Source: Klebsormidium nitens
Lineage: Eukaryota; Plantae; Klebsormidiophyceae
Assembly (NCBI GenBank): GCA_000708835.1
Contig: DF237154.1
Location: forward strand, 1-64,000
Length of the DNA: 64,000 nt
Direction: 5' to 3'
In this document: positions 4,301 through 29,200 of the stretch, piece after piece
Layout of the letters: every line of letters starts with the position of its first letter
Position numbering within the stretch: position 1 is the first letter of the stretch
The notes under the pieces: model-generated
The model's database searches: none
What the model saw: the letters and a program-made list of their open reading frames with translations, nothing else
Told to the model about the DNA's origin: nothing
Translations under genes and position numbers: made by a program

Positions 4301-7272
4301 GTTCGCCTTACTTTGCGGATCTGACAACGCCTGTCCAAAGCAGCGCTCCTTCCGAGCGGTCACTGGCCATATCAGGAAGCACAATGGACGGACAGGCAAA
4401 AGGGAGCGGGTTCACGTGGGGCCTCAAGGTGAGGATCGTAGGGTTTAGTTGTTCTGATCACTTCTGCTCCTCGAAGCTAGTAAAGGTTCCTGAGAAGAAG
4501 GTCAATTGTTCTTTGTGCGCTGTTTTTGAAGAGACGTTGGAGTTCCAAAATGTTCACTTTGACACATTGCCTGCTGAACAACCGCAGGAGAAGGATTGAT
4601 TCATTCAGCCGCTTCGTCAGCAAGCCTGCTCGATGCCAACTTTTCTTCCGGTAGACGAAAACTGCCACTCTAGATCCACTAGCATTTGCAACAAGCATGC
4701 CGACCGCTACCTGTCGTCCCTAAACGTGGTTACGCGCGTGCCTCCACTTGCAGGAGCCCTCTCCACAGTTGCCCAAGCTTCCCGGCCTCGCCCTCCCCCC
4801 CAAGCCGCTCCTCGACTACTCCGGTCCTTCCTCAAGGAAACGAACCAACTTCGGGGCCGCTGCCTTCGAGGGTTTCGGCGACGTGTCTGGCCCGAACAGG
4901 GACCTTCGGCTTGACGGCTTCGAAGGGTTAAGCAAGGGTTTGGGCGAGGTTCCGGCTGAGACCGTGCAAGGGTTTGACGCTCCCAGGAGAAGTTTGGCAG
5001 GGATTGCAGGTGAAGTAGAGTCTGAACCTCCAACAAGGAGCGGAGGGGCGACAGAGATTGAGGAGGAAGAGAGGGCGCCGTCGCAGGCGAAAGGGGTTGT
5101 GAGGCAGCGTGTCACAGCGTTCGAGCAGGGGACAATGACGTCAGCTGGGGGTCCGGTGCGGAGGCTGCGCCGGCAGGGCCGGCTCTCGAAGGAGCTGGGG
5201 AGGACACGTGGCAGCACCGCAGAAGGCGGAGAGCAGCCCGCAAAGGAATGGGCGGCCCACGGCGCTGGCGCTGAGCCGAACCGCCCTGTTCGAAACGTCA
5301 CGCTGAAAGACATCACGTCGAAGCGACGCGGCTCTGCCGACTCGGCCAGCGGATCGCTCCCCAGAACCCCCGAGATCGTCGAGTTCGCTCCCGTTTCCCC
5401 CCCATCCGGCGCCCCCCAGACCTCCTCGCCAGTCAACAATCCCCGAGCGCCCCACCCCGGGGGAGTGGGTGTATGCTCCGTGCTCGTGGTTCTGGAAGAA
5501 GGCAAGAAAGGCTCCGCTCGGAGCGCGCAGGAACCCCCGAACGTTATTGGTTGCATCGAGGTTCCGAAGACGACGACTCTGGCGGAACTGAGGGACCAGA
5601 TCCGAGGAGAGCTGGGGGCCAAGGGCCCCGAACGGTTCGCGTTTCTGCAGGCGGGGATTGGTGCCACGTGGCACGCGTTCAGTAGCGAGATCGAGGGTCT
5701 GGTGACCGCGTTAACACTCCCAGTCGCGGACGGGCCCTACCAGTACCTCGCAGGTGAGACGAGAACGTCTTGGCAACAAAGATGACCTCAACTTATATGC
5801 GGATGATGCAACATTTGAATGGGAACGCGGCCCAACTCCAGCTTTCCAGGAATTTTGCGGATTCGCGGTCTGACTTGCAATCAGGGCTAGTTCTGCGAGG
5901 AACACTTCCTCAGTCGTCGGCAGATAGAGCACTTGCAATCTTGGAGGCTTCGTCTGCTTGCGCACGATTTAGATAACATCGCATGCATAATTCTCGTGTC
6001 AAGGAGCTCGAACTTGCGGCTCCGCTTCTCTGGTATTGCATTACAAGAGCTTTGAGAGCTCCATGAACAGGTGAAAGGGGCACCAATGTTATTAGAAACT
6101 ACACGCGAATAATTATCAATGTCACCGCTCCACAGATGCCCCGCTGATATGGTACCTCAATCAATCGAATCTGGTATGGGGAACTCTGTACCTTGCTCCT
6201 TGATCCCCGATTCTGATCGCTGAACCTTTCGCACGGCCGTACAGCCACTCCGCGTGGCTTATAATGCCCAACCTTACTATTTCTGCGCATAACGGTCGAG
6301 AAAGGGCGGAAGTCAAGGTAGCCCAAGTTCAATTCTGATCTGATCACGAAAGAATTGTCTTTCAGGTGAGGCGGCAAATCCGCCCATCTCCGCGAGCCCT
6401 CCAGTTCCCAGCCCGACTCGGCACGCCGTCCGATTGGCAATCCTGCGGCCTCTCCCCGTGACGCGGACCCTGTATTCTGCGAACGGACCGAACGGAGTGG
6501 ACCGGAATGCGGCCGCCGCGACAAAGGACGGTGCAGGACGAGGCCTTGTTGGACGGCCGGCAGAACCCGGTGAGCTCAGAAGCTCTCTAGTTCACAGTTC
6601 TTCATGAAGGTTGAAAGTTTGCGCAAGTTTGGAAGGAGATAACAGAGAGAGACTTCGTGGAATATATCATTCAGGGTTGCTATCGCTGCAAGCATCTCGC
6701 GAGAGAATCTGAGGAACTCCCTTAAGTGAGCGCTTCAGCGGTCGAAGAGCGCTCTGCCTCCCAGGAGGATTTGGCGGGGCGCTGGTTTGGGACCTTTCCC
6801 ACCGCGAGGCGTACAGCTTCTCTTTGAACTCCTTGCAAGCACTGCCGTCCAAAGAAACTCTAGTCAAGCTACGAGTATCATGGTGTCGAAAAGAGGAATT
6901 GGTTGCCTCGTGAGCGGCTTTAGTTCCGATCCTCAAACATTGCAACTTCAGAGGTCGCTAAGAGTTAAGGCGATTTTGAGGACCTTGACTTTGCTTCTTT
7001 CGATCCATTTTTGGCGAAACGTCGCACTCCCCTGCCTCTTTGACTCTTCCCTTAGCTTCGCGAGTCTTCTTCTCCTTCCAGGGGAGGCCCTTTCGGGCCA
7101 AGGCACGCGCTCGCGTCTGCAGAACCAGGCGCCCAGATTCGCAGGCCCTTGGGCTGCAAGGCCCGCTCCAGCGCTGGCGGGGCTGAGCGTCCGCATGACG
7201 GGCGGGCTGCGCGAGGTGGCCATCGCGGACGCGGCCCGCCGCGAGAGCCGGCTGCGGTCCAGGGATAAATGA
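1362..7272 (+). CDS. Multi-exon ~1260-aa protein: N-terminal coiled coil, long Ser/Pro/acidic disordered region, C-terminal putative ubiquitin-like (beta-grasp) domain
   Basis: Exons 1362-1853, 2527-4428, 4754-5753, 6366-6569, 7082-7272 join in frame at GT-AG sites (phases 0,0,1,1), ending in TGA. Coiled-coil heptads at AAIKKLTAEVAEAAVFKQLLAEKEEELKTLREEQ. Segment IGCIEVPKTTTLAELRDQIRGELG..PERFAFLQ fits a beta-grasp pattern (inference). True start may lie in an upstream exon (~750-870). Confidence 0.7.
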
Positions 7273-8865: not shown

Positions 8866-11800
8866 CTAACAGCCGCTGGTCGCATTCGGCTGGGTGCCGC
8901 AGTTGGGCAGGCATATGCCGTCATATCCTTGCTGCAATACGGACGGTGAGGGAAGAGCGCCGCCGCAGCCACTGGCGCAATTGTACCCGGCGGAGCAGTT
9001 CCGGTCGGTGTTGCAGCCAGTGAGACAGCTGGCACAGTTTACGCCTGCCTTGGCAGACGGTCGAACCTGGCAGAGAGCAGCGATAGCTTGTCCAGAGTAT
9101 CTTCCGATAGCATGCGGACCCATCAACCGCAAAAATCGAATTCTTTCGCGGGATGTTGGTTGCTATTGACGTTTCTGCCCTGAGAAGCTCTTGCGTCACA
9201 TTAAGCAAGCATTTATTACTCAGACATCGATATTTGAATTCAAAAACGTCGGCGGAGTTATGAAGGCACTGCTCGCGGGAAAGGGGTGGGTTTGACTGAA
9301 TCCTGGGGATCCAGGGTGCGTATGGGTGCAAAGCAGCACAAAATTCACGTCAGGTTGCCGAAGTAGCTTCACGCTATCTCGACACGAAATTGGGTCGTCG
9401 AGACTTACCCGCCACAGCTGGGTTGCCGCCCACATAAGCGCCGCACGCACAAGTTGGGGCGCACTCGTTGCTCACTCCGTTCCCCAAATTGGTGCACCCC
9501 ACAAGAGGACCGATGGTCGGAGCTGCGAGCAGGCGGACCGTGACAGGGTTAGAAAAGATGACCGTCAACAGGACTCCTTCGATCCATAACAAGGCGTAAA
9601 TGAGAGCGGCCAGAGAAACGCGAGGCCCTTGACGTTGGATGAAAGGGCGGTAGCTAGGGCGTTTAATAATCTGGTCAACGGAGAGTTATTCTAAGTGGAT
9701 GCAAAGAAGAAAAACGTTTTTTCTGACGCGGCGCCTTTTTCCTTATCACGGCCAAAAAAGAGATGATCAATCGGTTTGTAGCGAGTTGACCCACTCCTCC
9801 TGAGCACGGAACACGTGGACGTAGGAACATGGACGCCAAAAAAGAAAATGGCCGTCAAAGGATGCAGCGAGCTTACTAGTTCAATACTTTAGTTTCTGAT
9901 TATCTTCCATTTCTCAGCAGGGAGGCTTGGCTTTCAAAGATCTTCGGAGATATAGCCCGCTGTATTTTGGGGGATTTTCGAAGCTGAGTGAACATCTGGA
10001 TTGCATCATCCGGTTTACGGTCAATGATTCACTGGTATGCACTTCCCAAAATTCGATCCGCAACCAAAGACACAAGCCTAGGGGACGAACCTCCGAGTAC
10101 AAGAGCTTCCGAGGTGTCGAGTAAGAACGGCTTTGAAAGTCTCTCATAGGCGCAACGCATCAATGAAAGCGACCGCTGGCAGAAAGATCGGCCGAAGGAA
10201 TCAAATCAGCACAAGTATCGGAAACCGGTTTTGCACCGACTTTCCACCAAATTAAGCTATCTCAACTTGCAAGAGCCAACAAGAAACGGTCTCATAGCGT
10301 GTGTTACTCACCAGTCAATGACGTGGGGATGGGAGTGGGCGAAGGAAGAGGGGGGATTGTTGGCTGCGGCACGGGTACAAGAGCGGCTGCAATACAGATA
10401 CCAGGCAATGAAAGTCATGGGCTCATTGCAGGCTTTCGTCTAATGCAAGCACGACACGCTCAGATTGCTAAAACTTTCTCCTCACCTTCTGAGGCTCGTC
10501 ATTGTCGGGCTCAATCACCCCCTTGATGGTTAGCACGAAACGGTCAAAGACACCTTCGACTGGCTCGAGCTTTGTCGGTTTTCTTCTAATCAGGTCTGAA
10601 CAAGAGACAATCCTTGTTGGAATGTAGTTGAGGACCGACAAGGGAGGCGGCGCGTGACTCTCGGGCCTTCAAAGCTAAAGTCTAGGACTTGCATGCTGTT
10701 CGCAATTTTCCATGGCCGATCATCCAAGATCGAGATTGGATTCGAGCTCTTAAGATGAACCTTTGAAAGTTCTTGACCTCACGGTCACTTAACCGAGTCG
10801 ATATATAGGAAGCGGCGGATGCGACAGTGATACATTTTCGTTTGCTTATGTAAAGGCCGCGCGCGATATATATATCAATCTCTCACCTCTTGATGCAGAT
10901 TTAGCAGGGTGATCCCCCGAGTGCAAATTGGCCCACACTAACTTATATCATCGGCAGCACATTTATCCACCCACTACTCATGCAAAAGCAACCGGCCTTC
11001 ATGTGACGAGAATGCTTTTCGCATGTGCCGTTCAAGAAAGCGCGGCAGCTGGTCCAAGGCGAAAGTCCTTAGCGAAACCAGTCAGAACTTTCCTTGACTC
11101 TTTGAAGCACAGGGGAACCCGGAATCAATCCATCATTGAACCTACTTGTTGCTCGGTACAACTTCTTCTTCCAGACATACTGGGTGACGAGATTGTCATT
11201 GGAGCCGCTAAGTTTGACACACGTCCAAAAACACGCAGCGACTTGCGAAAGTTGCGGGTGCTCACTGATGGGTGCCCATCCTTTCTCATTCAAACTGAAT
11301 AAAGGCTCTTAGTGTGCGGTTTTAGTCTGGGCGTCGTCAAAATACGCTTTTCGATCTCTAGTACTCCAACGAGCCATAGCAGATCCGGCAATGAGGGGAC
11401 TTACGAACCGTAAATCATATAAACTTAGAAATGGGCGGCAGCGCTGCAACGCTCTTAGTCTGGCACTGCCAAGTCCGAACTATTGCAGCCGACTCACCGG
11501 GACAGGCATAAAGAGGGGCAGTTGTGCCGTCCGGTAAGGTTATCACTTGCGGAATATGCTTTCCGGAGGGAAAGTCGTAGGGACACCATATCAACCTGGC
11601 ATAGGCGCTGTAGGCGCAACCGATAACCTGGGTTGTGTATGGAGTCAAGCCGGCGTACGCAACAGACGGACACGCGTTCCTCACGATTCTCAGATTGCCT
11701 GCAAGCGTCACCAACGATATGACGGGAACAATCACGTGCTTTGTTTGCACTGGACGGCAGACTGGAAATCATTCCATTGCTAGATTTGATCTGGAAAGAA

Positions 11801-12834
11801 AAGAATTGCCTGGATTTGTGGAGTCTGTCGGACCGACTCAGACGTCTTCCGATGCAGGAATGCACAAAAATCGCTCATGGTGATCATGGTACACTTCTCG
11901 CCTACTAAAAAGGCAAAGCAGCTTGAAGTTCAAGCGAGCCTCCTTTGTTTGAATACAGTACCTGTTGGATCAACCGCGTATGGGCATTGTGGACCGGTTG
12001 GATCCCCGTTTGTGTTTTAGAAACAATCGGCGTTGTCTGGAGGTGCCCCGAATGCACACCCAACCTGGACGAGAATGCCGTCCTCTCGGTATGGTCCAGC
12101 CATGGATGGACACCCTCCGACGGCTGGACGAAAGACAACAGAAACGGAGAGGGAGATTGTTAAAAAGCCGGATGACGTCAGCGATTGAGAATTGACTTTG
12201 AGGACCTTCACAAACATCAATGTGATAGAACGCCTTTATGATTAGCCAGACTCATTCTAGCTGAGTCAACTCCAGCACGGCGTTGAACCAGGCCGGTCAG
12301 CTCGACCCTTCTCCCATGAAAACTGCTGATCAAACCGCTTTTCTTAATTGAAAAGCGAATGTAGGACAAGCGTGAACTGATGAACGGGTATTCTTGAGGC
12401 AGCATCCCCTGCCAAACTTTCCACACATTGAAGAGACTGTTCTGGCTAGCTTGATACTTGCAATCATGACGCACTTTTTCGAAGTAGAAATGATTTTTTC
12501 CGTGTTCAGTCTGCAAGCAATAGATCATTCGAGAGATAAAGCAACGGGGAGATCGGCTACGCAATACCATAAAGCATGGGTGGTTTTTGGCGGTAAAGAT
12601 ATGACTCTTGAATGCAGTATCCCGGGTATGACCATAGAGCGGTCACTATGATCAAAACGTTTTGAACATTTGCGCGCTGAGAACTATTTCTGAGTACGGT
12701 CTCAAAGGGCCCTCTTGTCGAAAAGAGTGTCGCTTACATGCATACTCCGCAGACGTATCCCGCAAAGCCCCCAGCAGAGCCAGCAGTGCCAGCAGCATTC
12801 CCCGCGGAGTGGGCACCGGAACCGCCGCTGCCAT
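8866..12834 (-). pseudogene. Secreted modular Cys-rich protein, copy A (disrupted paralogue)
   Basis: Exons 12834-12738 (signal peptide MAAAVPVPTPRGMLLALLALLGALRDTSA), 12123-11962, 11698-11498, 10386-10312, 9522-9409, 9066-8866 are homologous to copies B and C. In-frame TAA at 12017-12019 where B and C have Tyr (C-H/F-Y-N/D-T-N-G). Last exon is 201 nt, one base longer than frame allows. Confidence 0.85.
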
Positions 12835-13254
12835 AATCACGTCAATTGCTTTGAGAGGGGTTGACGAAACCTTAACCTGCCTTGATGGAGGTTCACTCGC
12901 TGCTGCTTTGCAACTCTTGTTTTCGTTGAGGCTTCGACATAAATGCCGTCCGCTTGCTCTGCTTTTGTGGGAGAAGCGGTTTCTAGGTGAGAAGTTTGAA
13001 GTCCATCCTGTTCATTCCAACGCCCTTTAGAGTGAAAGATTGCAAGATCTAAGCCAGCTTAGCACTATGGCACTGGAGCAAGTCTATAAGTGGTTTGAAT
13101 GGAGCCAAGCTGACTTCACGCAGGAAGACATGCGTCAGGCTGACGTAGCTAGTGAGACGCACAGCGGACGAGAGAGCGTCCGTCGTTGGAGCAGCCTTCC
13201 TCCCTCGTTTGCCATCTTTGGGTAAGCGTCGTGCCCGGATAAGTCTGCCCGCAC

Positions 13255-13575
13255 CTCGGGGAGCGTCGAGGATAGCGCCGAGGATACTTTGGTGATTAGC
13301 TCCGAGGATACGCTAGAGATAAGCGTCGAGGATACTTTAAAAAACCGCGCCGACGAAAGTTTGGAAGATAACGCCCAAAATAGCGCCTCGGATACTGTCG
13401 AGAAGGGCGCCCGAAGATTGAAGATTAGCGCCGAGGATAGGATGGAAATCAGCGTCGAGGTTACTTTAGAAGATAGCGCCGATAATAGCGCCTAGGATGG
13501 GGTCGTGGAGGGCGCCGAGGATAATTTTTCCACAGCTAGCTTCGAGGATAGGGCCGAAAATAGCGTCGAGGATTG
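13255..13575 (+). repeat. Degenerate ~12-bp tandem array (consensus ~AGCGCCGAGGAT); inverted shorter copies at ~15040-15200 and ~20850-20990
   Basis: Repeated gcgccgaggata/gcgtcgaggata units; translates as SAED/SVED repeats in one frame. Confidence 0.7.
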
Positions 13576-14453
13576 CTTTGATCCGAGCGCCAATGACAGC
13601 CGCTGAGCGCCAAAAAGAGCGTCGACTAGGATAAAGCGCCGAGCGCCGGGGAAGAAAGTAGCGCTTCACGGCCAAGCCTTCTTCCGCTTGGCATGCCCAT
13701 CGTTCCGCTCCGGGTTTGAAAAGAAAGGATCCCGTCTCTAGTTTGCTGGTCCCGCTGCACTCCGCCCGGAGCCTTCCGCCAGAAGCCTGACGTTGGGCCC
13801 ATCCGTTGCGATCTTGTGCCGCCCCAATTTGTTTCAAATCTCAATGGGTGTCACTACTCTAAGGAAATAGGCGGCGGCCACGGTTCCGTTCCGCCGATAC
13901 TCAACCGGACCCTCGTTCCGCTGGTGCCAGTCAGCCGATTCTTTCCGCTCAGCTGGCGGCCGCCATCTTCATTACGATGGAACCGGGCCCACTTTCGCTG
14001 CAGCGCCGCGCCCCGGTCTGTCATTACACTGTGTGCCGAACCAGCCAAGCGGTCGGGGGTCGTGCGCGAGCCTTTATAACCAGTCCAGTCCGCTATTCGC
14101 AGGTACGTCATATCGGTCTAAAACTGGGTCGATTTCGATGCGACGCGCCCCGCCGCCGGCCACTCCGATGCACGGCCCCCCACGCCTTTCGATTGCGCGC
14201 GAGCCTGAACCGAACTGTTCCGCTAGCTCGCGGCACATTCCGGTGGCATTCAACATCGGTCACCGGGACAAGGAAGAGCGCCTAGCGCCAGCCCGGTTGG
14301 TCATTCTCCGCTCTGACCGGGTGTCAAGCGAGTTACCTTGCAGAGCGACTTTGACCTCCGGGGCACGCTCAAAAGAATCAGGGCCCTGTTCCGAAGCGAG
14401 ATGGCTTGCGAGCTGGCGGAACGGACCGGCTGAGGCTCGCGCGCAACGTAACG

Positions 14454-14633
14454 CACAGGGGTTTTTGGCCGTTGACCACAGTTGGTTACGGGCTGGTTCG
14501 AAGCTGGTTAACTGTTCAATGACCAGACTCGAGCAGTAACCAGGTTTTTAACGTGGCTATTTCGCGGTTATTGGTCAAAGAACCAGATTGAAGTTTGGTT
14601 ATCGAACCTGGTTAGCAACCAAACCTTCCTGTG
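14454..14633. mobile_element. 180-bp non-autonomous DNA transposon (MITE) with CACAG...CTGTG ends and 3-bp TSD (CACTA/CMC-like)
   Basis: Left end CACAGGGGTTTTTGG; right end reads CACAGGAAGGTTTGG on the other strand. Flanked by ACG on both sides (14451-53, 14634-36). Internal AACCAG/CTGGTT repeats in both orientations. The paralogous site in copy C (~20103-20125) lacks the insert. Confidence 0.8.
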
Positions 14634-15694
14634 ACGACCTGGCTGGGCTTGCAGCGGGACGGCCAATCGGGGGCATGCCGCGAAGCAACAGGTTCCCGGT
14701 CCGAAGCGGAATGGCCCCGAGCTGACGGAACGGACCGGTTGAGGCCCTGCGCGCATCGTGACGGCCTGGCTGGCCCGGCGGACAGCGGAATGACCAAGCG
14801 GGGCGCGTTACAGCGGAAGTGTCCGGGCCAATTCTACTGAAACTTAAGTGGCGGCCGCCCTCTAAAGTAGGGGGAACGGATTCGCTTATACTGGCCCCAG
14901 CGGAACGAGGGTCCGGTTGAGAACCGCGGAACGGACTTGTGGCCGCCAGCTTTGTTGGTCGACAGCGCCTTCAAATGTCTCCGATCGACGCTTGTTCCGA
15001 CAATATCTTTAACGCTCTCGTTGGCGCTCAGCCGCTTATCCGAAGCGCTCATCTCGACGCAATCCTCGGCTATCCTGGGCTATCGTTGTATGATCCTCGA
15101 GGCTGTTTCCGGCGTTACCATTCTCTGCGCTACCCTCGACTCTCAGAACCATTCTCGAAGCTACCCTTGGGGATATCTCGACGCTCCCGGAGGTATCTTG
15201 TCCGACCTATCTTAGTTCGACGCCCACATGAAGGGTACAAACAAGGGAGAAAGGCTGCTCTCTGCACGACGGGGCAGTCTTGTTTTCTGTGTGCGTCTTA
15301 GTACATCAGAAACCTGATTCCGTCCCAAGTAGGATTGACCAAGGAGCAGCCAGCATTTGGGCTTTGCAAGAAGTTTCCATACAAGGGGCTGGATACTTTT
15401 GCGTACTTCCTCTCTGACAACTGCAGTCTTCCTTTACCTCAAGCTTTAACCTTCTATCAGACCATCAACGGCGCTGGCGGTACGACAGACAAGCTAGCCC
15501 GAGCCCGCCGTAGCGACCACCTCGTGATCGCTCTATGAGAATAGAAAGAACAACCGCAAAGCACGGCATGCAGCGAACCCGTGAAAGACAAAGCCACAGC
15601 GGACCCGGCACGCGATAAGGCGGTGCAAAACCCGCTTGCTTTCACAGAGACAAGTCAAGGTCTCGGCGCTACCTCTGAGAGGATTGGCTTCACT

Positions 15695-18600
15695 ATGGCA
15701 ACGGCCTTCTTCCCGACTACTCCACTGAGAATGCTGCTGAAGATTCTCGCCCTATTGGGGGCCGCGCAGGGAGCGTTGGCGCAATATTCATGTAAGCCAC
15801 CTACTTTCTAATGAGAGGGCAATCCAGGTCGTGCTGAAAACCAGAGATGATGCACCGAGCTTTGAATCCATTTCACGCATCAATTTGCATGAAAGTTCGT
15901 TTCGACCCGAAATACTGCATCCAAGAACTTCGTAAGACAACCCTGAACCCGCCAATGCTAACTTAGGTGTTTACATTGAATATTTTAAGTGGTTGAGCAG
16001 ATTTCCCTGATATTGCTTCACTTTCCCAATGATGGCCCGCAACTCGGAAGCCGAGAACAATCTTTCCCCTATTTTCATTGTTGCACATGCTAGAAATGAT
16101 TCTCAGTGAAAGATTAGCTAAGCATCTTTCCCCGTTGTCGCAAACCACGTTCTGTTACAGGAACTTGGCAAGGAATGTTGTCTGAAGAAAAGCCGTCGAA
16201 GGGTTGGTTCCGTCTCACATTCGAGTTTTAGTAAACATGTTCAGTGAGCAATCTCTGTCAGAGTGGGGTAAAGACTTACCCACCTGTGTTGACGCCGTCC
16301 AGAACACTTCAAGAGATCATGAGTCAATCCTGCAACTTTCAATAAGGCTAATGCAATAAGCTTGAGGTGCTCGGACTTCATTTCCAACAACCAGATTGAA
16401 CGTTTAACAGTTGCGCGTTCGTTGTCTTTTCCAGCCGCTGGAGCATGTCCGTCTACAGCCCAAGACCCAGCCGTCCCTCTTGTCGAAGTCGTGTGCTCCG
16501 TCGGGACACCTCCGTACAATGACTACGAGTGCCATTACGACACAAATGGAGAATCCTTTTCTCTTTACATTGCGCTGAATTACCAGTGCCCAATATCGAC
16601 CAATCCAACAGGTAGTATACCCCAACCTTGAAGGCTCGCTTTGCATTTCGCTTTGCCTATCAGCAGGCGGAAGGTTGCAATTTGATCAGTGTACGATTCG
16701 TTTGTTCTTTCATAGAAACATGTCTGAAGCCGGTCAAAGAACCCCTACTTCGCGCCGCTTCGTTTGTTAACGTTTATGATAGCAGCCGCCTGATGGATTG
16801 GCTCAGGATACTCTCTCCACCAGTCTTCGTTTGCTGAGCGAAGCACGTGACTCGTTGCAGGCTCTAGCCTCTCTGACCGGAGACTCTCCGGAAACGCGTG
16901 CCCTTTGGTTGGATACGTCGCCTTGTCCCCACAAGCGCTCCGAAGGATTGCTTGTGTCTATGACATCCCAAACGCGAGCCCTTACAATATAGTCACGTGT
17001 GAATACGACGTCCGCTCCGGAAAAGTGATGGATCTCGGCGTCGAGCCCCTCTGTCCTGGTGAGGGATGCGCAGTAGCAAGGCGTGGTCATAAAACTCAAG
17101 AAAGATGATAATGAGCCAAGATAATTGTAAGCTCCGACTAAAACTAACAACCCTGACTCAAAAAAGTACCTGATCCGCACCCATACCCACCCTAACCACC
17201 AAACCAACCTTGCCCGTCCCAGTGCAGTTATGTTTTTATTGTCTCCGCTTATTAGTACTTTTTCGGGTTCAAGACCCTGGCTTGACAATTGGCCAATAAA
17301 GATTGCCGCGTACTTGCGGTTCAGTTCAGCTGACATTGGCTACAGGCTTTTACATGTGATCTGCGAGAGCTGGGTTCCTTTCGGAGATCAGGTGTCCAAA
17401 CGTGTCCTGACGACGCCAATGCCACATTTGTAGGCTCCACGTTTTTGGTTTGTTCTAGTTAGGACGGATGTGCACCGTCATCTTGGGGAGCAATAATTGC
17501 AAGGCATCTAGTGCACAAGCAGTGGACCTGCTGACACTCTTGAAAATCTGCCAGTTGTAGGTACACTGTTTGGGAGTTCAAAAGCGGTCATATATATCGA
17601 GTCATCATAAGAGTTTGCTGAGTCGCAAGCACTACCTAACGTTTCTGTTTGCGAAAGAAGTACGGCTTCTGATGATACTTATGATGATGATGATAACGAT
17701 ACTCAGCTGGCGCTCATTGCCCTCTTCAAAACATATCTGTTTAGAACTGGACTTCCGCCACTAACCAGGCTCACCTTAAAGAGTCCTGTGGTTTCACAAC
17801 AAGACATCTGTTTTGCAGACGCTCTCGTACCCTTCCCCAAACCAACGGCCCCCCTGCTTCCATCCCCTTCGCCCACTCCAACCTCTACGCTAGCAAATGG
17901 TGAAGCAAATCAACTTTGAGAAGAATTTCTTATCAGTCTCAGGTTGCAAAGTTCAAGATTCATTAAGACAGCTTGCTTCAGCCAAGGTGATTCTGTGCAA
18001 GGTCTCGATTCCTGATCCCTCTTCCGAGTCTCTTGAGGCCAGCAACCGACGCACTGATGCGTACCTATATTTTCAAGCTTCTGATGGCGGTGATTAGAAT
18101 TCTCGGTTAGTGAGTTGCACGTAGACTCGACGCAACTCAACTCCTCTCAAAGCCTTGCTTACGTGCCTTGCTTACGTGCCTTGCTTCTACTCAACAGGAG
18201 CCTCGTCTCCCTAACGGACACAAAAAGCTTGCACCTCACAGGGTGCGAATGTCTCCGTTAACGGCCTTATGTCTTAGCCCTGTCTAGCCATGTAACGGTA
18301 CTGTGAAGATGTTCTAACTTCAATGTGAAGGATTAACCCTTTTTCAACCTGTACGATCCGACAACTCGCAGCTTCAACCATTGGTGCTCTTGTCGGATGC
18401 ACCCCCGGGAATGGAACGAACTCCGGGTGCCCCGCCGGGTGTGCTTGCGGCCGTTACTTGGGTGACGCTTTGGCAGGTGATTATCACTACTAGACCCCAA
18501 TGTTGCATCCAGAGAATCTTATATCGATTGTTACCAAGACGATTTGGCGCGAATTGAAACGGGTACTCGAAAGTGTTTCTCCACCTCAAGGCCGAATGTG

Positions 18601-18871
18601 ATTCTCGCGCGCACGCCATGTCGGCATTCTGTGACGACACCTGAGCTCTGCTATCCCTACGTCTCTGCCAGGTCCGACCGTCTGTCAGGCAGGCGTGACC
18701 TGTGCCAGCTGTCTTACGGGCTGCGACACCAACTGGAACTGCTCCCCCGGTTACAACTGCGCCGGCGGGTGTGGCGGCGCTCCTCCCCCGACGTCCGTAC
18801 TGAAGCAAGGATTCAAAGGCATATGCCTGCCCAACTGCGGCACCCAGCCGAATGCTACTAGCGGCTGTTAG
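15695..18871 (+). CDS. Secreted modular Cys-rich protein, copy B (285 aa, intact)
   Basis: Exons 15695-15791, 16435-16611, 16861-17058, 17819-17899, 18372-18476, 18672-18871 total 858 nt, open frame, GT-AG, all introns phase 1. Signal peptide MATAFFPTTPLRMLLKILALLGAAQGALA, two 4-Cys modules, a Pro/Ser linker and a 14-Cys C-terminal region ending CGTQPNATSGC*. Confidence 0.88.
17081..17273. mobile_element. ~190-bp dispersed repeat inserted in intron 3 of copy B
   Basis: Absent at the homologous position of copy C (22861-22870). An inverted homologue sits at ~27793-27990. Weak terminal inverted similarity (GGTCATAAAACTCAAGAAA / GGTCTTGAACCCGAAAAA). Confidence 0.55.
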
Positions 18872-19999
18872 AAGAGTACATGTGTGGAGCGGCAGTGGAC
18901 TCATCACAGTCACTGATTTGCATGTGGCATTCGACGGAGCTACATGAAGAACTCTCGTTTTAAGAAGGGAGAAGAGGGAGTTAAGTGGCTTGAATGAAGT
19001 ACGTCTTATGGTTCTGGCTTTCCAATCGGGCCGAATAAGGGGTCGGATCGGACTCTTTAATGCAACGCCATTGAGAGGCCGGCAGAGTCTCTAAAACTTT
19101 GACCAGGCGTAACCTCCAAATATTAAAAACGTGGCCCTTCGTCCTGAAATGAAGTTGGGCTCCCTTTGGCCCGAACATGAAGTGTATCAATGAATAGACA
19201 GGAGACGTAACTGCAAACGTAAGCTCCAACTGTACGGGGCCGCCTTGGTTCAGGTCATCCGATTTCACCGCGGAGTGATCACATGCCACGAAACCCCACT
19301 AAAGTAGCACCTAAATTCGAGCTCTGCATAGAAGGCAGTGCAACTACACGTGCAGGTGTGGCCTCGTCACAGTCCCAGCTATATTCTGGTTTTTGAGTCG
19401 GTCAAATCCGGAGCCCTGCTCTCTGCAAATTGCGCTGTTGGGCCCCACGGTATACCTTGAGCTCAACGGCTGAGATGTAACAGTGGTATGATCTTCAAAA
19501 AACAGAAATAAGGAAAAGCAGCCAACTTCACCCCGAATAGGTTGATTCCAGTCCCTTTTTATTGGGTCATGCCTCATGCGTTACGGCTGACAGGTCCATA
19601 AGGATTCTAAGTGCAGAAGCGGCCGAACTTCAAAAAGAGAAGGCCATTCCTTTCGATTTCATACATGAAAGTCGCTTCGGGCCGGAAAATCCTTGGGCTC
19701 TTGTTGAGCGGCCGGGCAAGCTGCTGGCGTTCGTATTCTGGCGGCCACGTCTGAAAGGGAGTCGCTAGCGTTGACTGGTTGTGTGCTTCTGAATCCCAAG
19801 ACTTCTCACCGAACGTCGTTCGTTTCCGCGACTTAGTAGCTACTTTCGTTCCAGTAGACGTTGCAGTCGCAGCGAAACAATTGGCCGGGTGCATCGGCAA
19901 GCAGGGGTCCCGACTCGGGGCGGAGCGGTGCCGTTGGAAGCGCCGCGACAGTGCTGTAGTGAACAAAGCCCGCACCGGAACCACCGAACTGCCCCGTGC

Positions 20000-20420
20000 A
20001 GCGGATTTGCCGATCGGGGCGCGCCTAAGTGGAACCAGGGCCCGTTTCTGAAGCTATGGCTTGCGAGCTAGCGGAACGGACCGGCTGAGGCTCCTCGCGC
20101 GCAACGGAACGGCCTGGCGGGGCTTGCGACGGGACGGCAGACCGAGGCACGCTGAAGCGAAATGGGGCCCGTTTTCGGACCGGAAAGGCCCACGTCCTGA
20201 AGGAACGGACCTGCTGAGGCTCGCGCGCAATATGAAGAGTGCCTCGCTTGCAGCGTAACGGCCAATTGGGGGCACGCCGCGAAGCAACAGGGTCCCGTGC
20301 CGAAGCGGAATGGCCCCGAGCTGACGGAACGGACCGGTTAAGGCTTGCGCGCATCGTGACGGCCTGGCTGGCCTGGCCGATAGCGGAATAACCGACCGGA
20401 GCGCGCTGCAGCGGAATTGC
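20000..20420 (+). repeat. ~125-130-bp tandem unit x3 containing GGAACGGACC(G/T)G(C/T)T(G/A)AGGCT..GCGCGCA; two units at 14340-14800 and two inverted units at ~13990-14240
   Basis: Core motif starts at 20073, 20202 and 20326. In copy B it starts at ~14417 and ~14727, 127 bp apart once the MITE plus TSD is removed. Confidence 0.75.
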
Positions 20421-21335
20421 GCCCGGTTCCGTTGAAGTTTCAATGGCGGCCGCCATCTACAGTAGGCGGAACGGATTCGCTTACACTAGCCCCAGCGGAA
20501 CGAGGGTCCGGTTCGGAAGCGCGGAACGGACCCGTGACCGCCAGCTTTCGTAGGACCAGCACCTTGCAATGACTGGAACAATCTGAGGGCAAGATCAAGA
20601 AAAGAACCATGACCCAGCAGGGTCTCTGGCGGATCGCCTCGGTTCCGTACGCGGAGGCGTTAGCAGAGTTAGGAGTCGGTTCACCACTGAAGCGGAACGA
20701 ACATCGACGGAACGGCTTGGCCGTGGAGCGCTTTTCTCCGTACCTCGGCGCTTAGCGCGCCATCGCGGGAGTGAAGATTTTTCCGAAAATGCCTTCATTG
20801 CTCTCTTCGGCGCTCAGCCGCTTATCCGAAGCGCTCATATGAATGCACTTCGACGCTATCCTCGGCTAAGTCTTCGTATCATCCTCGATGCTGTTTGCGG
20901 CGTTACCATTCTCGGCGCTGTATATCCTCGACGCTCAAAGCTATTCTTGACGCTACCCTCGGCGCTATCCTCGGCGCTCCCCGAGGTATCTAATTGGCCT
21001 ATCTTTGATCGACGCTCACCTCAAGGAAACAAACAACGAGAAAGGCAGCTCTCTGCACGACGGAGCAGCTCTCCTTGTACTGTGTGCGTCTCAACAAAGC
21101 AGAAAGCATGATTTTGTCGCATGGAGCTTTGACCATTTTTTGGCGAGCAGCCAGCGTTTGAGCTTTGCGATATCTTGCCATACAAGGCGCTGGATACTTT
21201 CGCGTAGGTCCTCCCTCAAATTGCAATCTTCCTTTCCCTCAAGCCTTGACCTTCTTTCAGACCCTCAACGGCGCTGGCGGTACAACAGACAATCTAGCCC
21301 ATGAGCCCGCACTAGCGACCCCCTCGTGATCGCTC

Positions 21336-21340
21336 TATAA
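21336..21340 (+). promoter_or_regulatory. Putative TATA box of copy C (TATAA; TATGA at the homologous 15534 in copy B)
   Basis: CTCTATAAG ~160 bp upstream of the ATG, inside a block conserved between B and C. Function not demonstrable from sequence. Confidence 0.25.
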
Positions 21341-21498
21341 GGTTAAGAAGAACACACGCAGAGCAAAGAGGGCGGGCGAACACGTAAAAGACGAAGCCTC
21401 AGCGGACCTGGCACCCGATAAGGCGGTGCGAAGAAGCACGTACTTTCGTAGAGACAAGTAAAGGTCTCGGCGATACTTCTGGGAAGATTGGCATGACT

Positions 21499-24400
21499 AT
21501 GGTAGCGGCCTTCCTCATGGCCACTCCACTGAGAATGCTGCTGACGATTTTGGCCCTATTGGGGGCCGCGCAGGGAGCGGTTGCGCTATATCCATGTAAG
21601 CAACCTATCTTTCAATGAGAGGGCACTTCTAGGCTGAACTGGAGACCAGAGATGATGCATCGAGCTTTGAATCCAGTTTACACATCAGATTGCATGGAAG
21701 GTCGTTTTGAACCGATTATTGCATCCAAGAACTTCATAATACAACCCTGAACCCGACTGCGCTGATTTGTGAAGTGGTTCAGCGGATCCGAGTCTCCATT
21801 GCTTCACTTTCCAAATGATGGCCCATAACTTGGAACCCAAGAACAATCTTTTCCCTATTTTCATTGTTGCACATGCTAGAAATGAACCTCAGTGAAAGAT
21901 TAGCTAAGCATCTTTCCCCGTTGTCGCAAACCACGTTCTGTTACAAGGAATGTTGTCTGAAGAAAAGCCGTCGAAGGGTTGGTTTCGTCTTACATTCGCT
22001 TTTAGTAAACATGTTCGGTGAGCAATCTCTGTCAGAGTGGGCTAAAGACTTACCCACCTGTGTTGACGCCGTCCAGAACACTTCAAGATATCATGAGTCA
22101 ATCCTGCAACCATTCTATAAGGGGACATGCAATAGACTTGACGTGCTCGGAGTCCAGTTCCAACAACCAGTGTTGAACGTTTAACAGTTGCGCTTTCGTT
22201 GTCTTGTCCAGCCGTCGGAGGATGTCCTTCCACAGCCCTATATTCGGACGTCCCTCTTGTCCAAGTTGATTGCTCCATCAGGACATCTCCGGGAACTTCC
22301 TTCGACTGTCATTACAACACAAACGGAGATCCCATAATTATCGGTAGAACTCTCCCGTGCCGAATATCGACCGATCCAACAGGTAGTATACTCAAACCAC
22401 GGAGGCTCGTTTTGCACTTCGCTTTGCCTTGATCTAGCAGACGAAAGATTGCGATTAATGTAGTGCGGGAAACGTTTGAAATGTTCGTTATCCCACAGAA
22501 ACAAGTCTGAAGTTGAAGAGGAGTACTTCACGCCGCTTCGTTTGTTAACCCTTATGATAGCAACGGCCTGATAGAATCAGCTCAGGCTCCGCTGACTTTC
22601 ACTCTTCATTTCCTGAGGGAAGCACGTGAACGTTAACGACGATGTTATTGTTTGCAGGCTCCAACCGGACACTCTCCCGTAACGCGTGCCCGTTGGTTGG
22701 ATTCTTCGGCGGGTCCCCACAAGCTTTCCTGATATCGATGATAACTTGTGTCTATGAATTCCCGAATACGTTCCGATTCTTATGCTACTACGACGTTCGC
22801 TCCGGAGAAGTGTTACACCCTAGCTTCCAATTCCCCTGTCCTGGTGAGGGCTGCGCAGTAACACGGACCCTGGCTTGACGTTGGGCAATTGCCGCGTATT
22901 TGCCGTTCAATCCAGCTGACATTAAATGCGAGCTATAAACGCGATCTGCGAGTGCTGGGTTCTTTGTGGCCCGGCCGGAGATCAGGAGTCGATCCAAACG
23001 TGTCCTGACGACGCTAATACCACATTTGCAGACTTCACGTTTTTGAACTGTTCATTCAAAACATCATTCAGTGCATCCGTCAAGTAAGGACCGATGTGCC
23101 TAGTCATTTTGGGGAGCAATCATTGGATGGCGACTAGTGCACCAGCACCGGGACCTACTGACCTCTTCCAAGTCTGCCACCTGTTGGTACACTGATTGGA
23201 GGGTTTAAAACGGTCATCGAGTCATCATAAGAATCTGCTGAGTTGCAAGTACGTCCTAACCTTCGTTTTGTGGCAAGAGACACGGCTTTGCTGAATGATC
23301 TCATGCTCCTCCGAAACACGCAATGTTGCGCTCTTCAAACCAAGTCTGCTTAGAAGGAAGAACGGGACTTAACCAACAATAACCAGGTCCACTCAGAGTA
23401 GTCCTGTGTTTGTGGATTTCACTACCAGAGATCTGTTTTGCAGCGGCTCTCGTACCCGTGCCACAACCAACGGTCCCGCTTCTTCCTTCCCCCTCCCCTA
23501 CCAACGCATCAACGGTCCCCATTCTCCCTTCCCCTTCCCCCACCAACGCTTCGACGGTCCCCCTTTTACCTTCCCCTTCGCTCACTCCCTCTCCCCCGGG
23601 GATCCTTCTTCCCTCCCCAACGGTTCTCCCTCTGCCCTCCCTTCCGCCCACCCCTATCCTCACGCCACCGATTGGTGAGGCCAACACATACAGGCTGTCC
23701 GTCGTATTGAGCAGTTCTGGCAGCTTGAGACTGCTTGCTCGAAGTGATATCCTGTGCAGATCAAGCTTCATTCCCAACCCTTTCGCGCCCTTCTCCCTCG
23801 GCTCGCAACTTTCTGATGCCATTGATAACTTTGAGGTGACAGGGACGCATGACTCATCTGCCGCTAAATGCGTTGCACGTCGACTCGAAGCAATTTGCCT
23901 CAACTCAACTCATCGCCTGGGTCACGTGTCCTTCTTCTTTACAAGAGTCTTTTCTATTTAATTAGAAAAAAAGACTTGCATTGTCGCAACGGATATGAGA
24001 GACTCCGTTGACGACCTTTTCTTTTCAAACCTGTCACGGTCTGCCTTAACGCAGCTTCGGCCGCTAGCGTTCCTCTACAAGCGTGCACCAACCTGGGGAA
24101 TGGAACGAGCAACGAGTGCACCCGCGGGGCGTGTACGTGCGGCGCTTACGTCGGCGGTACGCTGCCAGGTAGAAACCGAACTTTTCCGACCCCCCAGAAT
24201 ATTTCGCAGCTAACCAAACTGGTTAGGGCGCTAACCAGGCCTGGTTACAGACCGGCCCTGATGGCGGTCTGGCCAGGGCTTAGTTAGCGGAACCTGGTGA
24301 TCAGCAAGAATTGGTTATCAGCAAAAATTTCCTGAAAAAACATACCTTGCCTCGGAATAGCCCCAGATCGACACACCTCTGCCAAGATGTCTCGATGCCG

Positions 24401-24984
24401 ATCGAGATACACGCCTCTCTCAAGGCCCTTAAGTGAGAAGAATTTTACGCTACTGGACAGCAATCTCCAAATATGGCATCCGGTGGCACGCGAACCCCGA
24501 ATTGACCCCACCCCGTCCTCGGCAGCGTCTTACTTCCCTCTTACCTCAACGGAGGGCTTTTCATCTTTTGATTCGATGCCACTTACTGAATAAGCAGACT
24601 AACTGCTTATTCTAGTGGTCAAATTCTCAGTAGCAAACCCAGACCCAGAGAGCACAAAACTTGCTTAATCCCAAAATTCTTTCCAAGAATAGAGCGGATT
24701 GAGTCCTGCCTCACGCCTTAGGAAAGATTGTATCTCCGCATGAAAGGTCCGCGTGCTGAAAAATACTTCTTCCCTCTTCTACCCGTCCTCTTTCAGGTCC
24801 GACCGTCTGCCAGGCCGCAAACGTGAAATGTGCCAGCTGTCTTACGCGCTGCAACTCCGATCAGAACTGCCCTTCCGGCTACAACTGCGCCGGCAATTGT
24901 GGCGGCACCCCTCTCCCGCAAGGATCCATTAACGGCACGTGCCTGCCCAATTGCGGCACCAGGCCGAATGCTAGCGGCTGTTAG
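21499..24984 (+). CDS. Secreted modular Cys-rich protein, copy C (328 aa, intact; alternative ATG at 21493)
   Basis: Exons 21499-21595, 22212-22382, 22658-22843, 23444-23674, 24055-24168, 24797-24984 total 987 nt, open frame, all introns phase 1. Same Cys skeleton as copy B with an expanded Pro/Ser linker. Confidence 0.88.
24193..24336. mobile_element. Degenerate MITE-like element in intron 5 of copy C, probably the same family as 14454-14633
   Basis: Imperfect ~23-bp TIR (CAGAATATTTCGCAGCTAACCAA vs CAGGAAATTTTTGCTGATAACCAA) and multiple TAACCA/TGGTTA repeats. No clear TSD. Confidence 0.5.
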
Positions 24985-26240
24985 ATAAACGTGTGAGCCC
25001 GAGAGACAGTGAGATATGAGTACAGACTCTGCTTGGTTTGTGCAGACGACGAAAGCCACAAGGAATGGCTTCCATAATCAGAAGGACTTGGAATAACGGG
25101 GTCAAAGTGCTAGCTGGAATAACTAGGTGCGTCGTTCCCCTTTGAGATTCTAGTCGGGCTGTATCTGAACGTCGGGTTCAAACCGACTGTGATCGCTTCT
25201 AGGACCTTAATTTCGAAGTTCATCTTAACTTCAACGTCAGACTTCGAATGTACATTGGGAGCTTCTTGCGTTTCTTTAGTTGCCTGGTTCTTTGGCACTC
25301 GATGTGGAGACGTCACTCGCGTGGGTGCAGAGTGCAAAAGCGTCGGCTCTTTAAGTCATAATCACATGTGCACGATTTCAGTCCATCGCGGCTGCAAGAT
25401 CTCTGTGCATATGAACACACTTTGCATATAAATAGACTTATACGTATGTACATACACAAAGTATATATAAACACGTTTTATTTCAATTCCTGTGCACCGC
25501 GCTTAGGCCCGCGCGGGCCCAGGGTCAAGCATGATGACGTGTTAGCTCGTCGTCCGTTAAATTAGCGACTTGGGCTCTCGTCAGTGTCGTCATGCGCAAA
25601 CCGAATGCGTCAACGCCCAGTCGGCTGGCTGGGTCCTCGATTGTTTCACTAAAATTTAAAGCGCGCCAATAACGCGCCCAGTGTCGATCCTAGTCGGGGA
25701 GCATCTGCACTCCATCAACCTCATGAGTCCACCTTGGTCCGTCCACTTTTGGCTGTCAGAGTCGCTTTTCACAAAATTATCGACTGCATGCTCGCCTTTA
25801 GCTTCAACAAGAACGTCGGGCCTTTGTGCGAAGACGTCTGCGCAGATCAATGTTCGATTTTCACGCACAGAATCGCGAGCTAGTGCAAAGCAACTGCACA
25901 GGCGTGCACTATGAAACGTACATGTCGTGGAATCCAATCATAGCATGCGGGAACAATCCTAAGTTCGTGCAGTTTGACAATCCCATCCTGTGCCCAAGCA
26001 CAGAAACAATCTTCGTCACAGATAAAGGTACGGGTCATGCATGAACCTTTCAGTTCCAGACGACGCGGCAATGGCCGCCTGCACCGAACAGATCGCTTCA
26101 CTAACCCAACTAACTTCCACATACCACTACTGTACAACCTCAATACCGCGCTTACCCCAGCGCTGACCGTGAGTTCCTCATTGTCTCTTCTTATCACAAA
26201 CTTTTACCTAAAGCAGCGCAGTACATTTCCGAACGCGCAG

Positions 26241-29200
26241 CTAAAGGGTATCATCGATAGGGACGCCGTGTTTCAAGAACCTATCAGCAGCCGACACCGC
26301 AGTGGTGCTGCATTCGACAACGCCGCTACAAAGATCGCCAGGCAGGACGGGCGTGTCCTGATGGGGAGACGATATGGAACCTGCAAACAATGGCAGACGC
26401 TAATCATGTAAGAACCGAGTTTGGTTGATCACAAGATTCACACCTGAAAATTTTTAAGCTGCCGCCTTGAGAAAACGTTTCAAAACTCCCGCAGGAAGGA
26501 GGGCAGCAAATGCCAGCCGACGGCGGTAGCAAGACACGCGAAACCAAGGCACAGCCAGAACGCTGAAAAAAGGTTTGTCAAGCGTGTACGTTCATCTCTC
26601 AGGAGCTGTCGTTGGCCGACAATTGAGCGCACGGTGTCTGACGCTTTACTTCCTTTCCAATTCTGCGGCTGAAATCGATGGAGGACCTTTCATACCAACT
26701 GAGAGCGAGAGAACAAGTGTCGCCGGCGGAAGCGAGATTGACCGGCACCAATCCGAATTCTCGCCCAGCTACTTTCATCCTTCCAAAAATAAAGCGTTCC
26801 GTTCAGCGTTGAGGGCTGACCTTTACTCGCAGCTTGAGTCGACCGAAATTTGGAAGGGAAGAGGCCTGATCAGAGGCATGATAAAGAACGGACGAAGAGC
26901 GCCAACAGAACCACTGCAAAAAGCTACCATTGCCGAAGCAAAAACGCAGAGTGGCAGAAGCGAATCAACTCAATCTTTAAAAGCCCACCTGCGGTTTGGC
27001 AGGCCCGCATCGTTTTGCAGTGCTCTCCCTCGTCATCCCTCACGTTTACAAACACATCGTACAAGTTCTCTGCGGATACGGAGAACGGGCGTCAGCAAAG
27101 TTGGAAGAAACTTTGAGTCGAGTCGGGACATTGACTTTGCGCACAGGAGTGCTGAGGAGCAGACCATCAACGGATTTGGAAAGCTGGGAAAACGAGGCCA
27201 AATGTGTCTTGAAGCATCTCCTCAAGAGCTTTAATCTGGGGTCGGTAACGAGAGGGACGTTCGGTGTCAGGTACTCGCAGCGTCGCCTGTCTTTTTAACT
27301 TTTCCTCAAAAGTTAGTCAGCCGGCCAGAGCAGGCGAAGTTTGTACAACGTCCAACTGACAAGGACCGAAATATTAACAATTCAGAGAAGGTCGCTCTTA
27401 TAGACGAACACTCGAGTTCACCAGAAAAGTACATGATTGGCAGAACGCACCGGATTTGGCAAAAGCAAAAGTACAGAAAGTTCAGATATGACATTGTCGG
27501 GGTTCCGGCAACAACAGAGCCTTCCTTTCTGGTTCGCTCGTCTCGTCTGAATCAAGTCAGACGAAGGCGAATCTCAAGTCTTTGACAAAGACGGTTCACA
27601 AGCAGAGCAGGCTTATCGGGATTGGTCCAATGCACGCCTGCCAGGTTATAGAAACGGCCGCCTATGAATTCCTCCCGATTTATCAACTGACCAACCGGCG
27701 GCATGAGCGGCTTACCTATTTTGGGTCGCCGGACGCCCGGTGTGGCGGCCGTCTGAAACTCGTCTGCAGAGAAAGAGACCTGGTGAGACTCTGTGTCGAA
27801 CTGAAGAAAAACTAATAATGAGCCGAAATAATACTAAGGTAACCGCACTGGGACGGGTAAGGTTAACTTTGGTGGTTAAGGTGGGTGATCGTGCGGAGCA
27901 GGTACCTTTTTGGGTTAGGGTTTTTGGAGTGAGTCGGAATTTGATATTATCTTGGCTTTTTAAGCTCTTTCTTGAGATTCGTAAAAAGCTGTGACGCTCT
28001 CCCCCTGCACGTGGATCTAAAGGATGTAACGCCCTTCATTGCGAGAACCAGGGTCGCAGACCGGTGTCGGAACAGGAGGAATGCATATCGAGCAGCAGTC
28101 TAGACGTCCAGTGATTTCACTGTGATGCCTTAAATTGACAACCAACGCTTGCCCCCAGAAAAAAGGTCGATTAAGATTCCGGTCAGATCAATCACGATCC
28201 GGAACAGACCCGACGACATTCGAGACTGCGGCGTTGGCTTGTCTTTTAACAGTTCAACACCTCCAACTGGGTTTTCCTTTTAGAACGGGGGCTCGATGGT
28301 GGAACCACACTACGAGATGCCCTCAAGCTCGCTCTTTGGATCTCACTTGATGCAAACGTTCCAACCGTTGCTCGCGCACTCAAGAATCTGCCCAAACGGG
28401 CCCAAGCCCGTGACAGCACCGAAAATTGCTGCCACCCGAGAAATCGTCCGGCGAATCTTAGGCGGCGCCTCTGCGAAAACGCCGCCGAATTTTCCAGCGA
28501 GGGAGGCTGCTAAAGCCCTTTACAAGCACGCTCACCAAACATGTACAGGTCTCCCTCGGTGTAATACTTGACGGCGACCTCCGGGGCCGGCTTCGTCTTA
28601 AGCTTGTCGCCGAAAGTTGCCAGGAACGAGTCGTACGTGTGGTACGCGTGCGTCTCGACGCACTCCATCAAGTGATCTGCACGGTGGCAACAAGCTCGTC
28701 AGAAAGAAGTGCTCTAACGTGCGAATACTGGAAAGAAGCAGGTAAACAGGGATCAACGGTCACTTGGCTCAGAAGTGTGAGATACGAGCAGATAAAAAGA
28801 GGCACTTATCTGGTTGGCACACGCAAAGAAGTGACAAAACGATAAGTTTCGAGAGTGCCGGACATACACGGGCCGTGGGGGATGAGAGCGCTTTGGAATC
28901 GCCCAAACGCAGAATGAAAACGGAGAGTGCGAGACAAAGCGGCAACCCCGCGCGAGCACTCTTCCTATCGTGTCACCTACGACAGAAGCACGACATGATG
29001 GACCCTGAAAGCTCAGATAGGGTTTCGTGACTCACACGCCATTCTCGGGCTGACCAGGTAGATGATGCAACACAGGAGGTAGTAGACGACTGCCACGTGT
29101 TGCGCCAGAAAGCGGTCGATCCACCGCCGGTCGCCTCCCAGCGACTCCATAATGAGCAGGTGATGCAGCTCGTTCCACGATTCAGCAAAGTGAACCTGCG

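Follow-up and report, generated by a model that had tools for sequence, protein, structure and literature searches.

A Klebsormidium nitens gene family of probably secreted cysteine-rich modular proteins with fast-evolving heads and a conserved terminal module

The start of Klebsormidium nitens scaffold DF237154 raises the question of what its cysteine-rich genes encode and whether such proteins have been described before. We analysed its first 64,000 nt (hereafter the window). The first-pass annotation had claimed three paralogues here, one broken on the minus strand (A) and two intact on the plus strand (B and C), and the frames rebuilt from the sequence confirmed this. Genes B and C are intact and each has six exons, B with an open 285-aa frame and C encoding 328 aa, and both with 22 Cys. 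Each has five introns, all of them GT-AG and phase 1, and each internal exon is therefore a frame-symmetric module; the predicted coding junctions thus number five per gene instead of the six claimed. Gene A has the same six exons, interrupted by an in-frame TAA in exon 2 (12019-12017) and a one-base frameshift in exon 6 (near 9051). Because these are two separate lesions, A is more likely a pseudogene than an assembly error, and it was analysed with the breaks masked or left out. With the lesions ignored, its 22 Cys codons align with those of B and C, in agreement with the claimed positional conservation of all 22. Paralogy of the last exons was far above chance (blastn; A-B E = 6e-67, B-C E = 6e-35), and B and C share 78% identity across 2,150 nt, upstream DNA and introns included. 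The exons are as follows.

12738..12834, -, gene A exon 1, predicted signal peptide (75% aa identity to paralogues E and F)
11962..12123, -, gene A exon 2, 4-Cys head module I with in-frame stop
11498..11698, -, gene A exon 3, 4-Cys head module II
10312..10386, -, gene A exon 4, short Pro/Ser/Thr stalk
9409..9522, -, gene A exon 5, 4-Cys module (C-x9/10-C-x3/4-CxC)
8866..9066, -, gene A exon 6, 10-Cys terminal module with frameshift
15695..15791, +, gene B exon 1, predicted signal peptide, putative cleavage after residue 29
16435..16611, +, gene B exon 2, head module I, skipped in public model GAQ84761
16861..17058, +, gene B exon 3, head module II
17819..17899, +, gene B exon 4, stalk, 26 aa, 31% Pro, 27% Ser+Thr
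18372..18476, +, gene B exon 5, 4-Cys module, skipped in public model GAQ84761
18672..18871, +, gene B exon 6, conserved 10-Cys terminal module ending in Cys
21499..21595, +, gene C exon 1, predicted signal peptide
22212..22382, +, gene C exon 2, head module I
22658..22843, +, gene C exon 3, head module II
23444..23674, +, gene C exon 4, stalk, 76 aa, 34% Pro, with an internal 42-nt tandem repeat (23468-23579)
24055..24168, +, gene C exon 5, 4-Cys module
24797..24984, +, gene C exon 6, conserved 10-Cys terminal module

From exon 1 to exon 6, B and C carry 0, 4, 4, 0, 4, and 10 Cys, and exon 6 ends in Cys. The N-terminus is hydrophobic (KD15 1.75-1.99) and followed by an A-x-A type cleavage site in six paralogues, from which we infer that the proteins are probably secreted. 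No hydrophobic segment exists downstream of the signal peptide, and the sequence has neither a membrane nor a GPI segment. The head modules have 55-65 residues and 4 Cys each; two are present per gene (four in paralogue E, below), and modules I and II are homologous to one another (hhalign E = 9e-5). The stalks of B and C consist of 31-34% Pro and 26-27% Ser+Thr, with SP, TP, and VP dipeptides, and stalk length varies among paralogues (about 25-76 aa). The C-terminal part, previously taken as a single 14-Cys region, does end in Cys but is divided over two exons (4 Cys in exon 5 and 10 in exon 6), and paralogue D has the 10-Cys exon and lacks the 4-Cys exon 5. Similarly, the C-terminal sequon, which had been considered conserved, is present in A-E but gone in paralogue G. 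It lies no more than six residues from the C-terminus, where N-glycosylation is often inefficient; given this position and its loss in G, we regard it as weak evidence.

A head-module profile searched against 1.84 billion cluster representatives retrieved three real matches, all of them K. nitens hypothetical proteins (GAQ84761, GAQ88199, and GAQ91916), and no match from outside Klebsormidium. All three are unnamed family members and are mis-modelled, with foreign 5' or 3' parts and skipped exons, and we found no paper naming any of them. In GAQ84761, which represents gene B, exons 2 and 5 are missing and the 5' part is foreign, and no gene is called for A or C in the public annotation of DF237154. 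Our models thus correct that annotation, in which B is mis-spliced and A and C are missing. The three public models share many splice sites with ours, which is independent prediction and not RNA evidence. The loci of the other two proteins, on scaffolds DF237357 and DF237831, hold paralogues D to H.

DF237357, 12325-15123, paralogue D, stalk frameshifted, without exon 5
DF237357, 17896-22914, paralogue E, intact frame of 410 aa with 30 Cys, its four head modules arranged I-II-stalk-I-II
DF237357, 24968 to contig end, paralogue F
DF237831, 114-2964, paralogue G, starting from module II
DF237831, about 5180-5270, orphan signal exon H

The end of F and the start of G fall in the same intron at complementary positions (25736-25909 at the end of DF237357 and 1-113 at the start of DF237831). 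They are therefore probably one gene split by a scaffold gap, suggesting that the two scaffolds are adjacent. In total, the three scaffolds examined contain about seven genes and one relic in at least two clusters, so the three genes originally described stand for this locus but not for the whole family. Three of about eight copies are broken or relics (A, D, and H), and B, C, E, and G have intact frames with fixed Cys. In paralogue E, a stalk remnant and the exon-5 module lie in a single exon (DF237357, 22054-22185), implying an apparent frame-keeping deletion or intron loss.

Searches of Pfam, PHROGs, PDB, ESM Atlas, and predicted folds, made exon by exon or via public protein ids, gave nothing significant. 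Pfam was also blank on the public protein part covering exon 5 and half of exon 6. These results support the earlier view of an unrecognised, lineage-specific family, which so far appears to be confined to K. nitens and undescribed. The head Cys spacing may resemble the CP..CxY..CxY..G..CP repeat of secreted proteins in Agaricomycetes (mushroom-forming fungi); no fungal protein was among the matches at E <= 0.001 or at E <= 1.

The design itself is familiar. The presumed secreted head-stalk-base layout is like that of chimeric hydroxyproline-rich glycoproteins of plants and green algae (HRGPs; chimeric extensins, with volvocalean pherophorins and agglutinins as a design analogy), which combine a signal peptide and a Pro/Ser-rich rod with folded end domains. 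Unlike in those proteins, the K. nitens stalk is short, and the end domains match no Pfam family, pherophorin included. Classing a protein as an extensin or chimeric extensin requires at least two SPPP (Ser-Pro3-5) motifs (PMC4769139); B and C have none, and assignment to extensins or chimeric extensins was rejected. Pherophorin was rejected on the missing Pfam match and on module size (35-70 aa vs a domain of about 200 aa). Solanaceous (potato-type) lectins consist of hevein domains on an extensin-like linker, and the K. nitens proteins are like them in having a Pro/Ser-rich spacer flanked on either side by small disulfide modules and, possibly, a role in recognition. A hevein/CBM18 chimerolectin was nevertheless rejected, with no Pfam match at E <= 10, no CC/CCS motif, and a different Cys spacing. 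HyPRPs (PMC2216038) are secreted proteins and likewise form a fast-diversifying tandem family in which a Pro-rich segment precedes a conserved Cys-rich C-terminal domain. They differ in lacking N-terminal Cys modules, whereas the C-terminus here has 4 + 10 Cys; HyPRP/nsLTP 8CM was rejected because B and C have no adjacent CC, no Pfam match, and no eight-cysteine motif. Part of exon 6 shares the C-x5-C-xxGY-x-C spacing with WAP and ICK knottins, as weak matches: the WAP four-disulfide core (PF00095) scored 9.9 bits against a gathering score of 20.8 (E = 1.2, one of six members), and the best PDB match of the ICK type, heteropodatoxin-2, had E = 0.42, both scores being far below the cut-off. Both folds need an adjacent Cys-Cys pair, which is absent in all six exon-6 copies, and both were rejected. 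EGF, laminin-EGF, and TIL gave no Pfam match exon by exon and were rejected; only a CxC-xxY-xG look-alike was seen. The layout resembles that of chimeric Pro-rich wall glycoproteins, and the three disulfide modules are unnamed.

A check of the predicted junctions against RNA returned no transcript for either intact gene in the window. None of 24 same-species runs was shown to hold B (share 0.00), and no contig matched C at 80% likeness (3,901 letters) in four runs of four studies. As these data are assembled contigs, which drop rare transcripts, the result says only that the genes were not abundant in those cultures.

The contrast between a constrained tail and fast-evolving heads is solid. 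Under M0, dN/dS rose from 0.16 in exon 6 through 0.50 in exon 5 to 0.67 in head I and 0.76 in head II, and pooled pairwise estimates followed the same order (0.35, 0.41, 0.56, and 0.82). This matches the first-pass annotation, which had described variable N-terminal modules on a stalk with a conserved C-terminus. Between B and C, dN in the heads (0.33-0.34) was equal to or above the divergence of neighbouring introns (0.14-0.30). With all gap-free columns, site models supported a class with dN/dS > 1 in head I (M1a vs M2a, p = 5e-5; M8a vs M8, p = 4e-6) and head II (p = 0.011 and 0.004, respectively), and such a class was never favoured in exons 1, 5, or 6. When only Cys-anchored blocks were used, M1a vs M2a gave p = 0.29 for head I and 0.002 for head II; without the broken A and D, the values were 0.008 and 0.2. 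In null simulations for the anchored head II, the observed value was reached once in 91, and therefore p is about 0.02. These tests used our own codon-model implementation on only seven sequences with many indels, and recombination can inflate them. Swapping of heads and tails between paralogues was tested and not shown. In both heads, high-posterior sites occupy odd offsets around Cys2 and Cys3 (e.g., -3 from Cys2 and +1 from Cys3), and the Tyr at +2 after Cys3 is invariant. In an AlphaFold head model of moderate confidence (pLDDT 65), Cys2 and Cys3 fall on separate strands (28-34 and 43-49), and the candidate sites are predicted to form one face of a beta-hairpin; the tail model (pLDDT 46) was unusable. 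Overall, positive selection on the heads is likely but not proven, with moderate support that depends on the subset.

Our preferred reading, which we judge about as apt to be right as wrong, is that this is a tandemly duplicated family evolving by birth and death that encodes conditionally expressed, non-enzymatic binding proteins, secreted or wall-bound, in which a conserved anchor carries variable heads on a glycosylated stalk. The signal peptide would send the protein out of the cell, and the stalk, by analogy with plant and algal HRGPs, may become an extended rod through hydroxylation and O-glycosylation. At the other end, the conserved terminal modules would attach to a fixed self partner, either a wall polymer or each other. 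The heads would present one variable face of a disulfide-tied beta-hairpin, and this face may bind a changeable external ligand such as microbial surfaces or enzymes, the substrate, or other cells. Expression would probably be restricted to a condition or life stage outside the culture RNA-seq. In favour of this reading are the open frames and fixed Cys of B, C, E, and G, the contrast between tail and heads in dN/dS, the recurrence of the high-posterior sites on one predicted hairpin face, the missing hydrophobic segment after the signal peptide, and the glycoprotein framework that has been proposed for the wall of K. nitens NIES-2285 (PMC4927632). Glycosylation and a role in recognition, defence, or adhesion, both suggested in the first-pass annotation, are putative. 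The negative RNA result, the subset-dependent selection, the decay of A, D, and H, the limited confidence of the structure models, and searches that found neither a ligand nor a fold homologue count against this reading.

We consider it unlikely that the proteins are instead secreted, soluble antimicrobials or enzyme inhibitors with a defence role, in which every 4-Cys head would be an inhibitory unit whose contact residues diversify against proteases or wall-degrading enzymes of microbes. A fixed Cys scaffold with variable sites, built of two or four repeats of a small disulfide module, would suit such proteins, and multi-headed inhibitors of comparable kind are known (Kazal, Bowman-Birk, and Pin-II). 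The missing membrane anchor and the failure to detect the genes in culture RNA, as expected of an inducible gene, point the same way. However, no inhibitor was matched in Pfam, PDB, or fold searches, the WAP match being limited to one exon 6 below the cut-off. Moreover, the variable sites lie on a strand face and several loops and not on one reactive loop, and a stalk with a conserved base would suit a tethered protein more than an inhibitor that is free.

Structural wall or mucilage glycoproteins, that is, interchangeable coat proteins whose redundant heads vary under relaxed selection, seem similarly improbable. The M0 dN/dS of head II cannot be distinguished from 1 (p = 0.11), positive selection is lost in two of four robustness subsets, and several copies have decayed, all consistent with loose constraint. 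On the other hand, a class with dN/dS of 2.5-6 was favoured in four of six data sets at positions matching between the two head modules, the stalk is without Ser-Pro3+ or Tyr cross-linking blocks, and bulk wall proteins should abound in culture RNA, where none was seen. A recently silenced family, in which nothing is made today and B and C remain open only because disuse is recent, would account for the missing transcripts and the broken or relic A, D, and H, but is highly doubtful given that B, C, E, and the F/G halves keep all splice sites, frames, and Cys despite 13-28% divergence in alignable B-C introns, that the many exon indels all preserve the frame, and that exon 6 is so strongly constrained.

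Within the preferred reading of secreted binding proteins, a bolder version can be formulated, which we put forward only tentatively: an independently evolved, diversifying family of extracellular recognition proteins in a streptophyte alga. Its head would be a small beta-fold of a new kind, copied by duplication of symmetric exons and positively selected on one face; a conserved wall anchor would display it on a glycosylated stalk, and the genes would be expressed only during attachment, under microbial challenge, or in a rare life stage. If the heads turned out to be inducible modules that diversify for recognition, which we rather doubt, the family would deserve much more attention. As it stands, a probably secreted family that combines fast heads with a conserved base, and includes three unnamed disulfide modules, is a concrete candidate; its weight is limited by the negative RNA result and by its confinement to one genome so far.

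The duplicated unit extends beyond the coding exons, as two regions in the window indicate.

12835..15694, unstranded, two homologous upstream regions, back to back between the divergent A and B (12 inverted pairs; blastn)
20030..21498, +, counterpart upstream of C, with homologues before A, B, E, F, and H (blastn)

Those of A and B are about 1.4 kb each and contain GC-rich degenerate repeats and a 12-nt minisatellite. Since the divergent A and B flank two copies of this shared region, the duplicated unit comprises the gene and about 1.4 kb of upstream DNA. With 70-80% identity between copies, the region lies ahead of A, B, C, E, F, and H (other copies at DF237357 16363-17895 and 23712-24960, and DF237831 3834-4688) and, across the window and these two scaffolds, was found only before family genes. 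Possible explanations are a promoter duplicated along with the genes and a mobile element by which they were carried. In public models it is translated as spurious protein, at the N-terminus of GAQ84761 and the C-terminus of GAQ91916.

Some introns also differ between B and C. Intron 1 (15792-16434 vs 21596-22211) is 87% identical, more than the head exons (71-72%), possibly reflecting partial gene conversion or a constrained intronic element, and introns 4 and 5 are not alignable (53-55%). Intron 3 of B carries an insertion of ~200 bp (about 17070-17270) that is absent from C and has a 77% identical inverted copy 10 kb downstream (27806-27979), consistent with a small interspersed element. 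Elsewhere in the window, ORF pieces at 43245-47643 (+) read by eye, from their translations, like a VIT + von Willebrand A domain protein, and ORFs at 39046-41339 (-), including a long exon of 387 codons, like an F-box/LRR-type protein. The stretch at 49600-52900 is GC-rich (69% at most), has long ORFs that overlap on the two strands and ~100-nt degenerate repeats (51818-52541), and is possibly a mobile element.
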